The notes under the pieces: model-generated
Told to the model about the DNA's origin: nothing
Database searches by the model: none
Seen by the model: the letters and a program-made list of their open reading frames with translations, nothing else
Translations under genes and position numbers: made by a program
In this document: positions 18,967 through 27,478 of the stretch, one piece after another
Position numbering within the stretch: the stretch's first letter is position 1
Layout of the letters: each line of letters begins with the position of its first letter
Assembly (NCBI GenBank): GCA_004431415.1
Contig: QPMI01000535.1
Location: 492,026-556,025, forward strand
Length of the DNA: 64,000 nt
Direction of reading: 5' to 3'
Source of the DNA: Cyanophora paradoxa CCMP329
Lineage: Eukaryota > Plantae > Glaucophyta

Positions 18967-21900
18967 ATGGGGCAGCGCCGGCCAGCGCCGTCCTTGAGTA
19001 GGCCAGCCATCGGCCTCGCCATCGCAGCGCTCGCGGCCGTGTTCGTCTTCGCCGCCGTCGCGGCGCCGGCGCACGCGCACGCGGGGCACAGCCACGACCA
19101 CGACCACAGCCACGGGCACGGGCATGTGGACATCCTCGACGTGATCAGGCGCGGGCGCGCCGATGGCCGCGCGCGCGCTGAGACGGCAATCGTCACGGGC
19201 GGCGCGCCCGCCGCCCGCTCCCCACTCGCGGCATCGACCTATGGGCCAGTCCGTGCGCGCTCTCCCATCCCGCGGCGGCTCGCCCTGCGCGCGCGCGCGC
19301 GTCCGGTCATATGCATTTAGACGACCCCGCGTCCAGCCCGGTCGGACTGACCTGCGCGCGCTCGACGCGCAGAGCCGGCAACGCGCTGCACGCTGAAGAG
19401 CCTCTCTTTCGAGCGCGCGAGGGAGGGTGACGCGACGGTGAAGCCCTTCGTGATGAACACGGCCCAGGTGCCCGAGCTCGCACGGTCGCCGCTCTAGATC
19501 TAGATCTAGATCAGACCGACTCCCCGCGGCACGCGCGGCGCTGGATCCCGGGTCCCCGGAGGTCAATATGTCTGCTGAAGTCGCGCATGGCAGGTTGAGC
19601 AGCTCATCCGGGCCGGCAACCCGTCGTTCACTGACGCGCGCTTCGCCCCGCACTACTGCATCGACGGTGCGCTCCCGAGCGCGTTTTCGAGCGCTCGCGC
19701 TCGCGGCTAATCTAGCGCGCCGCGCGCCTGCGCAGGGCGGCACCTGAAGAACGCCGTGCACACGCCCGGCGGCGACATCTCGGAGTTCCTGCTGGCGCTC
19801 AACGCCTACCAGCAGGTCGTGCTGAAGGGCGCGGCCCTCACCGACGAGCAGGTCTACCAGATTATGATCGACTTCATCGACCTGTACGCCATCCCCAACG
19901 AGGTGCGCTGCCTCCTCCGCCGCCGCACGCCATGTGCATGGCCAGCGTGCAAGTTAAACAATTCATTAATTCAATATTCATGATCGTAACTTATTTCCGC
20001 CTCCAGCGTCCCTTCTACATGCATTCGGACGATCACTCGGACCACTATTTCAAGGTGGGAATTTCAAAGCACATAGAAGGTTGATCGAATCTCGTCTCAC
20101 CCTCGAATTCTCCGCGCCGCAGGACCTGCTGGCGTACAACACGTCGATCGGCACCCGCGCGCTCGACAAGGCGTACACGATCGAGGGCGCCCCCGCCGCT
20201 GACCGCGACGCGATCATGTCTATGGCCCTGATGCCCGACACCCTCGGTCCGCGCCTCCAGCCTTAATTCGGCGCTTTTCTTATCGAGCCGACGTCGCGCA
20301 GGCTGCGGGCACCTGAAGCGCACACTGAAGAATCCGGCGATCTACGAGACGCCCGAGGCGCTGACCAAGAGCGTCATCAAGGCGTTCTACAAGGCCCTAT
20401 GGCGCGACCGCGACGCCGGCAAGGGTGCATGACATCGCATGAATATTTTCTCATTTCGTACTGGGTTCCCGTACGGTCTCTGATGCGCTGGGCCCGCAGG
20501 CGCCGTCGAGTTCCAGATCCTCCCCGGCGAGCACGTCGAGGGGTGCGGCTTTGAATTTATCGATTCTGAAAGCAGTGATTACTGCAAGGTCTCAACTCGC
20601 CCCTGCAGATCCGTCGCGATCGTCCACTCCGAGGCGAAGTGCGGTGACTCCGTCTTCACGTTCAAGCCCAACGCCACCTTTGGCCAGGTCAGTCGTTCTT
20701 GTCCTTATATATAATTAGTTATCTTCTTGTTTGCGCGAATTAACAAGCGCGCCTCGTGTTCAGGTCTTCATCTACCACGCGGACTCGCTCGACTACATCC
20801 GCCAGACCATGACCCGCTTCTTCTGCGACCACAAGACCAAGCTCGGCGCCCTCCCCGCCACCGAGTGCCGGTGCGCGCGCCCTGCAAGCCCGGTCCTGCT
20901 CGTCCTTTAATTTTGCCTATGACACCTCGACCTGTGCAGCCCGAGCGCCCTGCGCGAGAAGATGGTTACTATTTTCGACGCTGGCTTCGCAAGCACTGCG
21001 GGCGCCCTCGCCAACGTGCGCAATTACATGCGCATATGACCGTCAAATTTAATCCTAGAGCTCACCCCGCGGCTCGCATGCGCAGGCTCGCCCCATCGAC
21101 GCCGTGAAGATCACGGTCGACGGCTTCCCCGGCGCGAAGACGGCGGCGCTGACGCCGGCGGACGACCCCGAGTCGGCCCGCGCCGCCGCTGTGGCCCTCA
21201 AGCAGGACCAGGCCAAGGGCTGCCCCATCCTCGACGTGACGGCCTCCGTCGCCGCGGTGCGCTCCTCTTCCAAAGCTCCAGGACGGCGCCCCGCGCGCGC
21301 GCAGGCTTCAGCGCTGACGGGACTGCTCCGCGCGGCATGCGCAGGCCTCGACGGAGAGCGACCCCGAGAAGATGTGGCGCATCCTCTCGATCGAGCACGC
21401 CAAGGCGTTCGTCGGCGACGCGCACATCGTCGACGTCGTCAACCACACCTGGTCCTGCATCGGTGCGGATCGGCTCGAGGTCTCTTCAACTTAATTTATT
21501 GACAGTAAACTGAATCTCCCCGCATGCAGACGGCCGCTCGCACAAGGCGATCCTGGGCACGCCTGGCGGCACCATGAGCGAGTTCATCCTCGCCCTCGCC
21601 GCCTTCGTCAAGAACGGGGTGCGTCAACGTTGCAGCCGCGAGCCCGAGCCACGCCTCCACGTGACCGAGACTAATACTAATCGTAACCCGTCTGCTGCAG
21701 TTCACTGTGGCCAACGAGGACACGATGCAGGCGCTCGTCGACCTGTACACTGAGAAGTACACCATCCCCTACGTTCGGTGCGCGGATTTGAACTCGTTTT
21801 CGAAAGAATTTGTCTTCGCCGCTCGACGCATCCGTCCTGATCCCCTCGCAGGCAGTTCTACATGCACACTGACGTCAAGTCCGTGACGAAGATCGCGGCC

Positions 21901-24900: not shown

Positions 24901-27478
24901 CTACAAGACGGTCTCGCTCGACCTGCCCGACGACAAGAGCCTCGTGGCCAAGCCCGAGAACGAGAAGAAGTGCGGCGCGACGGACGTGACCGCGAGCGTC
25001 GTCGCCGCCTCGAAGGAGGACGACCCCGCGAAGCTCTGGCGCATCCTCACCGTCGACCACGTCAAGCCCCACATCGGCCAGCCGGCCATCGTCGACGTCG
25101 CCCGCCACACCTGGTCCTGCATCGGTGCGGATTATTCATTTTGAATTCGAATTTGTCGACTTGCGGTCGTGATCGCTGATCATGAGTTTCACTGCACAGA
25201 CGGCCGCTCGAGCAAGGCGATCCTGGGCACGCCCGGCGGCACCATCTCCGAGTTCCTGCTTGGCGTCGGCTCCTTCATCAAGAAGGGGGTCCGTGCAGCC
25301 GCGCGCGAGCCCGAGCTCGAGCCGATCCACCCGATCTGACCCGCCGCGCGCGCGCAGCTCACCATCCCCAACGAGGACACGATGCAGGCGCTCGTCGACC
25401 TGTACACCTCGTACTACACCATCCCCTGGACGCGCCAGTTCTACATGCACACCGACCACCACTCGGTCGAGGCGATCGCGGCCGCCCTCGGCGTCACCTA
25501 CGCCGACGTCAAGCCGTACAGCCCGCCGGGCAAGCTCCGCCCCGCCGTCCTCACCTACTCGGCGACTCCCAAGTACATGGGCTGCGGCCACGTCAAGATG
25601 ACCATCCAGAACCCCGGCGTGTACGGCATCCCCGCGGAGGTGACGACCTGGGCCGTCCGCTCCTTCCACCGCGCCCTCTGGGCCGACCAGCAGCGCGGCG
25701 CCGGCCGCTTCGTTCTCGAGGTCCGACCCTCTGAAGCGGGGAATCCCATACTCTATGTTGTGTTCTGACATGATTTCGTCAGGTTCTGGACGGTGACCAC
25801 CACGAGGGCGCCGTCATCCTCGTCAAGCCCGCGGGCTGCGCCGGCAAGACCGCCGAGGTCGCCCCGCACGTCGGCGAGCTCACGCCCGGCAAGAACGTGT
25901 CCAACGGCAACACCGAGGCCTTCGTCTTCCACGCCGCCGACGTCCCGACGCTGCGCAAGCAGAACGCCGAGTTCTTCGTCTCGACGCTGCGCCCGGCGCT
26001 CAAGAGCGTCCCCGCCGCGATCGCCAGCGCCACCGTCGAGGACATCGTCGCCAACATCACTGACATCTTCGCCCCCGGCGTGCGCCCGCTTCCATCCCGC
26101 CCGGTGTTCTTTTATCCGTGCGCGTGTGCTCACTTCGCGCGATCGACCAGTTCGGCTTCACCGCTGGCGCCCTCGCCGGCAAGCTCCCCCTGTAGTGCGT
26201 TGCTTCCGCCTCCCGCCCAACGCGCGCGGCTCGGGTCGCGATCCGTGCCTGAGGCGCGCTCGCAGCCAGGGGGCGGTCACCTCGGGCGACGAGGCCGTGT
26301 TCAAGGCCATCCTGCAAGACCAGGTCGCCCTCGGCAGTGCGCCCCGCGAACCTGTCGCGCCACGTCGCCACCGAATTCGAACGGCCCGACCTGACTGCGC
26401 ATGCGATGGCAGGCCTCGCGCCGACCGTGGCGAGCGCCGTCGTCAAGTTCGTCCTGTCGGTCAACGTCGACTGCAAGACCGTCACCGCCGCGACCATCGA
26501 CGACATTAAGACCAAGCTCATCAAGTGCGCGGCTCGCGGCGCTGCGATCGGCCCTCGCCGCGGCCGCGCTCACGCGCCCGGCCGCAGCGTCATCGCCTAC
26601 CGCGCGGCGCTCGTCAAGTTCAGCGGCGTCAAGTGCCCCGACGACGCCGTCCGCCGCCGGTGCGCCCGCGCGCCGCCCCCCGTCGCAGCACCGCCGCCCG
26701 ACGCCCCGGCTCCTCTGCAGGCTCCTGCAGGCGCCGTCCTCGTCCATCACCGTCAACCTCCTCCCCGGCGACCGTGCGCCCCGCTCCCTCCGTCCCGCCC
26801 CCTCCCCTCGCCTTTTCTCACGTCGCGCGCGCGGATCCGCAGAGCAAGGCGACAAGCCCCTCAACGAGGTCGTCAACACGCTGAAGAGCCAGCAGGGCAA
26901 CAACAACTTCCTCCCCGGCTACACGAGCGTCCTCACCTTCCCGGCGACCGCCACGCCCGTGGCGCCCACGACCCCGACCGCGCCGACCACCACCACCACG
27001 ACCACCGACGGCGCCAGCTCGAACCAGGTGAAGAGCACCAGCACCAGAACCAAACAGACCGCCCCCCTCTCTCTCTCTCGAGTTCTGACGCCCCCTCGCC
27101 CTCGCCCTCGCCCCCGCAGCTGGTGATCATCCTCCCCGTGGTCGTCTCGATCGCCGCCTTCGTCGTCATCGCCGTCATCGTCTGGTACATCGTCGCCATG
27201 AAGAAGGCCAACCGGTGCCACCGTCCCCTCCCCCTCTCCAGAGACGATCTACAAGAAAGCTGTGCTGACCTGAGCTATGCAGGCGGAGCACGGTGCCGAA
27301 GGACGCGTACGCGCCGAGCGGCAACCCGAAGGACGCAGTCATCCCCATCGGGGACCCGGCCGCCATCCGGGGCTCGGCGCCCTCCGCCAAGGAGTCGACC
27401 GCCGTCTTCGACGTCGCCATCGGGCCCGAGGCGCAGGCCGTCGCCAAGGACGACGGCTGGCGCGTCAACATCTTCTAA
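18967..27478 (+). CDS. Type-I membrane protein with four zeta/CDCA-like (Cys-His-Cys) carbonic anhydrase-like repeats; many exons
   Basis: Signal peptide (AIGLAIAALAAVFVFAAVAAPAHA) then GHSHDHDHSHGHGH. Four repeats each carry CIDGR..TPGG..SEF(L/I)L..FYMH(S/T)D..GCGH (Cys at ~19657, 21456, 23803, 25118; MHxD at ~20018, 21862, 24122, 25445; GCGH at ~20301, 22003, 24260, 25579). A Thr/Pro stalk (~26940-27010) and TM LVIILPVVVSIAAFVVIAVIVWYIVAM-KK (~27120-27206) follow, and the tail ends at TAA 27476-27478. Confidence 0.8.

Follow-up and report, generated by a model that had tools for sequence, protein, structure and literature searches.

A predicted surface protein of Cyanophora paradoxa with four domains of a divergent, CDCA1-like carbonic anhydrase fold

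Does the glaucophyte Cyanophora paradoxa possess a membrane-anchored protein built from repeated carbonic anhydrase (CA) domains of the zeta class, and which reaction would such a protein carry out? This question is raised by one gene in a stretch of 64,000 nucleotides (nt) from strain CCMP329 (GenBank assembly GCA_004431415.1, contig QPMI01000535.1, positions 492,026 to 556,025 of the forward strand), which is called the window here. The coding region occupies 18967..27478 on the + strand of the window and consists of 40 exons with 1877 codons and a TAA stop. An earlier reading of the letters alone (the sequence-only reading) had described the product as a surface-anchored protein with four domains like those of CDCA1, the cadmium/zinc zeta-CA of the diatom Thalassiosira weissflogii. 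Our structure models show that the domains have a CDCA1-like fold, and the protein represents a branch of the zeta-CA fold that is new and divergent; by sequence it falls outside the CDCA family.

Searches were made with single exons first, and then with P0001 and its parts. P0001, the best match of the exon-seeded HMMER search, is the public model of the same gene (1877 amino acids, aa), and a mapping script placed it exactly on 18967-27475, with the TAA stop at 27476-27478. P0001 has four copies of each of the motifs CIDGR, TPGG, YMH[ST]D and GCGH, one per domain. The domains are A1 (aa 120-440, 19444..21184, +; CIDGR 149, TPGG 161, YMHSD 211, GCGH 265), B1 (aa 465-755, 21345..22652, +; CIDGR 502, TPGG 514, YMHTD 562, GCGH 610), A2 (aa 975-1290, 23653..24937, +; CIDGR 1004, TPGG 1016, YMHTD 1066, GCGH 1113) and B2 (aa 1310-1602, 24995..26079, +; CIDGR 1351, TPGG 1363, YMHTD 1411, GCGH 1457). 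Each domain scored 263-278 bits against the family profile (265 for A1 and 278 for B1), which is far above chance. This bears out the earlier claim that four domains keep CxDGR, PGG, HxD and GCG.

One detail of that claim needs correction. Domains 2 and 4 had been credited with HEFHCTDGR, which is intron read-through; the spliced sequence is HTWSCIDGR, so that CIDGR is present in all four domains. An intron splits each of the four motifs (19657-19740, 21456-21537, 23803-23877 and 25118-25207), with the break at CIDG/R in A-type domains and at CI/DGR in B-type domains, and because of this interruption a plain frame translation hid CIDGR. The gene is transcribed and spliced as modelled. Contigs from three runs of three studies (X1, X5 and X8), which we guessed to be RNA, have at least 15 predicted introns excised exactly at the model sites, whereas the contigs of a comparison DNA run keep the introns. 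The three runs contain 0.57-0.59 of the region's words, which matches the expectation for spliced RNA. The B-type junctions 21462/21530 and 25124/25200 yield HTWSCIDGR; the SCI/DGR joints of B1 and B2 are proven because loose ends of RNA contigs at 21462 and 25124 read ACGGCCGCTC, the beginning of the following exon. Mapping of P0001 onto the window gave 39 introns of 55-126 nt, of which 38 are GT-AG; the lone GC-AG intron (23813-23872) is likewise absent from the RNA contigs.

The fold was assessed with AlphaFold models of B2 (m24e222253e97; predicted local distance difference test, pLDDT, 86.9; predicted template-modelling score, pTM, 0.88) and A2 (mb4331251b10a; pLDDT 94.3, pTM 0.93). A Foldseek comparison had been proposed by the sequence-only reading, and it turned out in favour of CDCA1. 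For both models the top matches in the PDB were solely CDCA1 repeats (3BOB, 7BEZ, 3UK8, 3BOH and 3BOJ), with E-values of 1e-3 to 1e-1, probabilities of 0.91-1.00 and TM-scores of 0.54-0.61 by target (the probability reaches 1.00 for both domain types; for A2, the best E-value is 1e-3); all other matches had a probability <=0.11. With VIA-align, B2 matched the CDCA1 repeats at Z 11.8-12.1 and its next match at Z 2.4. The exhaustive VIA-align comparison of A2 with 48,161 representative chains gave 3UK8_A at Z 11.7 (180 residues, root mean square deviation (rmsd) 3.4, 19% identity), and the runner-up reached Z 3.6. Over both models, the alignments with CDCA1 covered 177-181 of about 210 residues at rmsd 3.1-3.5 and 18-19% identity. 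CDCA1 (3BOB, 3BOH, 3UK8, 7BEZ) is the sole solved fold that matches, at a Z of about 12. Both models match the two-lobe fold of zeta-CA, for which nine strands and seven helices are typical; the A2 model has nine strands, as CDCA1 does (PMC4413181). The ESM Atlas gave no usable match by features, and by shape all TM-scores were < 0.3.

In the third repeat of CDCA1 (CDCA1-R3), the metal ligands are Cys473, His525 and Cys535, a water is hydrogen-bonded to Asp475 and Gly536, and an Asp/Arg dyad is present (PMC8217695). The chain order Cys-x-Asp-x-Arg, His, Cys-Gly is common to CDCA1-R3 and our family, so the candidate ligands and helper residues stand in the same order. The Asp-Arg dyad beside the first Cys and the Gly after the second Cys, both marks of zeta-CA, are present in all four domains. 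Alignments of 80 and then 133 domains gave C-[IV]-D-G-R, P-G-G, Y-M-H-T-D, G-C-G-H, Y, W, H-x-E and F as near-invariant family residues. The four domains retain all of them, and the catalytic-type residues are also all retained in the paralogues P0002 and P0003. Among the 133 rows, the first C is retained in 130, D in 129, R in 129, the second C in 132 and the following G in 114. The residue after the first Cys is Ile or Val; in CDCA1 it is Val474, which belongs with Phe537 to the CO2 pocket (PMC8217695); Phe603, Thr627 and Leu631 are further members of this hydrophobic pocket. In both models the first Cys lies at a strand end, the His within a strand and the second Cys at a helix start. The structural alignment starts at residue 460 of 3uk8_A, 13 before Cys473, and at residue 28 of the B2 model, 14 before C42.

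The layout around the domains is that of a putative type I membrane protein that enters the secretory pathway. From the N-terminus the chain runs through a signal peptide, a His-rich stretch, the block A1-B1-stalk-A2-B2-stalk and a Thr/Pro stalk to a single transmembrane (TM) helix and a tail of 71 aa. The arrangement of signal peptide, TM helix and short tail had been read from the sequence before, and it agrees with the hydropathy of P0001, where the only two hydrophobic segments are aa 9-37 and aa 1777-1811. The signal peptide (aa 1-37, 18967..19077, +) has a basic start and a hydrophobic core AIGLAIAALAAVFVFAAVAA followed by PAHAHA, after which cleavage is predicted. At the predicted mature N-terminus stands the His-rich stretch GHSHDHDHSHGHGH (19078..19125, +), which is a possible metal-capturing tag. 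Stalk/spacer 1 (aa 756-974, 22723..23652, +) follows B1, and its start is homologous to stalk 2 (aa 1603-1745, 26151..26919, +), which follows B2; the two share 30% identity (BLASTP, E 4e-10). Just outside the membrane there is a Thr/Pro-rich, mucin-like segment (aa 1746-1780, 26920..27024, +) that may be O-glycosylated. The TM helix LVIILPVVVSIAAFVVIAVIVWYIVAM (aa 1781-1806, 27025..27194 with one intron inside, +; hydropathy peak 3.2) is followed by KKANRR and then by the 71-aa tail (27195..27475, +), which the positive-inside rule would place in the cytoplasm. With this layout, the protein is most likely displayed at the Cyanophora surface.

Repetition is seen at several levels. The two halves of the protein (aa 100-770 and 950-1640) are 55% identical, A1 and A2 are about 57% identical, and between the A and B types identity drops to about 32%. 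Several introns of the first half have been lost from the second half of the gene, where exon 29 is 545 nt long. In a FastTree phylogeny the glaucophyte domains form one clade (97% local support) in which the A and B types are sister groups; A1 of P0001 is placed with A2 of this protein, and its B1 with its B2, and the paralogue P0002 repeats this arrangement. Either an independent AB-to-ABAB duplication in each gene or concerted evolution (gene conversion) of the halves would account for this pattern. A contig joint from 25861 to 23254 runs backwards in X5 and X8, with 39 foreign letters between its sides; here the assembly has probably merged the repeated halves, or this region and a paralogue, into a chimera. 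The window is GC-rich and intron-rich eukaryotic DNA, in which 16001-18000 and other stretches reach 81-85% G+C over 2 kb, as compared with 62-68% for the gene.

What would such a protein do? From the modelled fold we infer CA activity, and because of the fold and the catalytic set together, a metal-hydroxide hydratase of the beta/zeta-CA kind is the best mechanism. The protein would then carry four potentially active zeta-CA-fold catalytic domains on a surface-displayed type I membrane protein. In each domain one divalent metal (Zn, possibly exchangeable) would be bound by three residues, Cys from CIDGR, His from YMHTD and Cys from GCGH. The metal-bound water or hydroxide would be oriented by the CIDGR Asp-Arg pair together with the backbone of the Gly that follows the second Cys, and the hydroxide would attack a small linear molecule. 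Capture of the metal outside the cell may be helped by the His-rich N-terminus. As this is probably a surface protein of a photosynthetic cell, the reading that we favour is interconversion of CO2 and HCO3- at the cell surface, as by an external CA, with carbonyl sulfide (COS) and carbon disulfide (CS2) as likely side substrates; we put the chance of this reading slightly below even.

Several points weigh against the external CA reading, and the first of them concern the domains themselves. A Pfam search with 80 family members at E<=10 gave no CA family, and sequence searches of the PDB with one exon, two relatives and two family profiles never reached CDCA1 at E<=10. The latter gave chance matches alone (E ~1); recognisable membership of the CDCA family was not found, although the PDB contains CDCA1. 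Ten single exons had no relevant match in Pfam, and for P0001 and its relatives Pfam and NCBIfam gave no family covering the domain. The earlier term zeta/CDCA-like thus holds for the fold (CDCA1 only, Z 11.7-12.1) and for the residue order, but not for CDCA membership at the sequence level. In the literature we found no paper linking Cyanophora or glaucophytes to CDCA or zeta-CA, nor one linking rhodanese to zeta-CA. The spacings also differ from those of CDCA1: 62 against 52 residues from the first Cys to the His, and 45 against 10 from the His to the second Cys, the latter because of a helical insert. The position after Cys-Gly is an almost invariant His, whereas CDCA1 has the pocket residue Phe537, and the extra invariant polar residues (Tyr and Asp of YMHTD, HxE, Tyr and Trp) are unneeded for CO2 hydration. 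Finally, the clustering of Cys, His and Cys in space is a prediction.

The other points come from the family. An exhaustive HMMER search with one exon (25361-25768) found 198 relatives, which are spread over protists and bacteria and are unannotated. The closest are C. paradoxa paralogues with 4, 2 or 1 domains (P0002, P0003, P0006 and P0015) and proteins of another glaucophyte, Gloeochaete. Other eukaryotic members belong to Luapelamoeba, Synstelium, Planoprotostelium, Ploeotia, Chilomastix and Apiculatamorpha, and one further member lies on a metagenomic contig bearing eukaryotic genes. The amoebozoan member P0031 of Planoprotostelium fungivorum (1161 aa) carries the annotation of a fusion with an H+-pumping pyrophosphatase; the fusion may be genuine, or gene models may have been merged. 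The eukaryotic relatives are mostly heterotrophic (non-photosynthetic) protists, and bacterial members have ties to rhodanese and sulfide oxidation; this family context argues against an origin specific to a CO2-concentrating mechanism.

Because of the rhodanese fusions and the sulfide-oxidation neighbours, a COS/CS2-type hydrolase is a serious rival. It would have the same fold and the same metal-hydroxide chemistry, and its substrate would be COS, CS2 or a small thio-compound such as thiocyanate, so that the protein would be a surface H2S-releasing hydrolase without a part in inorganic-carbon uptake. CDCA1 itself hydrolyses CS2 via COS (PMC8217695). In a family profile search, 31 of 81 relatives had an N-terminal rhodanese domain, and those traced were bacterial; the named sources of such fusions are Myxococcales, Nannocystaceae, Nitrospirae and Labilithrix metagenome-assembled genomes. 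In P0056 the rhodanese is at the C-terminus; since both arrangements occur, such fusions arose on more than one occasion. A lipoprotein signal and an intact CRSGRR loop are present in some of them, which fits a sulfur substrate, but in many others the rhodanese is Cys-less. A C-terminal GST_N fusion, found in one member of the eukaryote-type clade, also favours this rival.

The gene neighbourhoods point in the same direction. Several bacterial members adjoin genes for sulfide:quinone reductase (SQR), persulfide dioxygenase, and TauE and YeeE-type transporters, and sulfur genes were found in four separate contexts (L006/L008, L010, L011 and L014). In L006 and L008, a rhodanese and an MBL-fold dioxygenase-like gene lie on the divergent strand, followed by a sigma-54 activator and SulP, and L006 has an additional rhodanese gene after the family gene. 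L010 (2225-4956) contains a type III SQR, DUF1641, a dioxygenase of the Blh type (annotated here as sulfur dioxygenase; the Blh-type neighbours are counted as persulfide dioxygenases), a rhodanese, TauE and YeeE halves. The family gene is directly downstream of a Blh-type dioxygenase in L011 (5041-5940), and downstream of YeeE halves in L014 (4228-5168) and L015. However, four of the eight distinct bacterial contexts had no sulfur genes. A Usp gene recurs beside bacterial family members in three contexts.

These observations need not apply to Cyanophora. The eukaryote-type and bacterial clades are separated with 99% local support in the FastTree phylogeny, so what the bacterial context suggests may not hold for the eukaryotic proteins. 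True rhodanese domains occur in bacterial relatives only, and the Cyanophora proteins are without one; in P0001, a candidate rhodanese at aa 126-179 was rejected, as its 18.9 bits are below the cutoff of 22.2. On balance, the sulfur links of the bacterial relatives and the CS2 activity of CDCA1 make a sulfur-substrate hydrolase at the Cyanophora surface a strong rival, though a clearly less probable one than the external CA.

A second rival keeps the CDCA1-like scaffold and changes the chemistry: the invariant Cys pair would be redox-active or sulfur-carrying, or His, Asp and Glu would form another metal site, and the protein would be a thiol or persulfide enzyme and not a hydratase. Such an enzyme would fit the fusions with rhodanese and GST_N and the proximity of persulfide dioxygenase genes, and it would give a use to the H of GCGH, the D of HTD, HxE, Y and W, which CA chemistry leaves unaccounted for. 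However, Cys-x-Asp-x-Arg, His and Cys-Gly are exactly the catalytic set of CDCA1 and beta-CA (PMC8217695), and an extracellular site is poor for persulfide relay chemistry; we consider this explanation improbable. That the ectodomain is non-catalytic, with its four domains serving as a module for surface binding, sensing or metal storage, is suggested by the receptor-like layout (signal peptide, repeats, stalk, TM helix, tail) and the His-rich N-terminus, but is very improbable, since the retention of all catalytic-type residues in the four domains, P0002 and P0003 is a pattern of active-site selection and the Pfam/NCBIfam search found no signalling domain in the tail.

We return to the external CA reading and compare the protein with known systems. 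CDCA1 shares with it the tandem repeats in a single chain, three in CDCA1 and four in the Cyanophora protein. However, neither sequence nor profile comparison detects any similarity between them, and the Cyanophora domains are each about 100 residues longer; about 35 of these residues form a helical insert that separates the His from the second Cys. The repeats are about 80% identical in CDCA1, compared with the much lower identity between A and B types given above, and the signal peptide, TM anchor and tail are features of the Cyanophora protein that set it apart. Zeta-CA is listed for diatoms only (PMC7215798, Table 1), whereas the present family occurs in a glaucophyte and also in other protists and in bacteria.

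The beta-CAs likewise have a Cys-His-Cys metal site and an Asp-Arg dyad (CxDxR), and a single repeat of CDCA1 resembles a dimer of beta-CA (PMC4413181). A2 weakly matches the Porphyridium tandem beta-CA (1DDZ; Z 3.3, 170 residues), and the sulfur setting in which bacterial relatives occur is reminiscent of COSase and CS2 hydrolase, which are beta-CA offshoots. We nevertheless rejected a beta-CA assignment: Pfam gave no beta-CA match, HxxC is absent from the domains (His and second Cys are 45 apart), and the best beta-CA structure, at Z 3.3, is a far weaker match than CDCA1. LCIB/theta-CA also has a Cys-His-Cys zinc site and is found in algae. This assignment was rejected too, with no sequence match in Pfam and no such structure at Z >= 2.2 among the best 50 of the 48,161 chains in the exhaustive A2 comparison. 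In Chlamydomonas, CAH1, a CA of the alpha class, is an example of a periplasmic or external enzyme that interconverts HCO3- and CO2. The location and role proposed for the Cyanophora protein, outside the plasma membrane, are the same as those of CAH1; the fold is unrelated, and CAH1 has a His3 metal site.

A wider proposal may be made for the family, and we offer it as possible rather than probable. The family would be a large, unnamed sister family of zeta-CA in protists and bacteria, with this gene as its most elaborate member. Its ancestral activity in bacteria would have been COS/CS2 hydrolysis by a metal hydroxide, coupled to rhodanese and persulfide dioxygenase, and glaucophytes would have duplicated the domain into two- and four-domain surface proteins acting as external CA (or COS hydrolase).

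The zeta-CA fold has been held to be a diatom speciality (PMC7215798). The same fold and catalytic set are now found in a family unnamed in the databases; glaucophytes, amoebae, euglenids, metamonads and many bacteria contribute its roughly 200 detectable members. Should the sister-family proposal be true, the family would amount to a new class or subclass of CA, and the Cyanophora protein to a missing component of the alga's carbon-concentrating system. If CO2 is what the domains hydrate, the protein would be a candidate external CA for Cyanophora, which bears on the old question of CO2 concentration in an early-branching alga. If they hydrolyse COS or CS2, the family would provide a new way of turning these gases into sulfide, tied to bacterial sulfide oxidation. 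Whichever the substrate, the activity of one domain would annotate the entire family.

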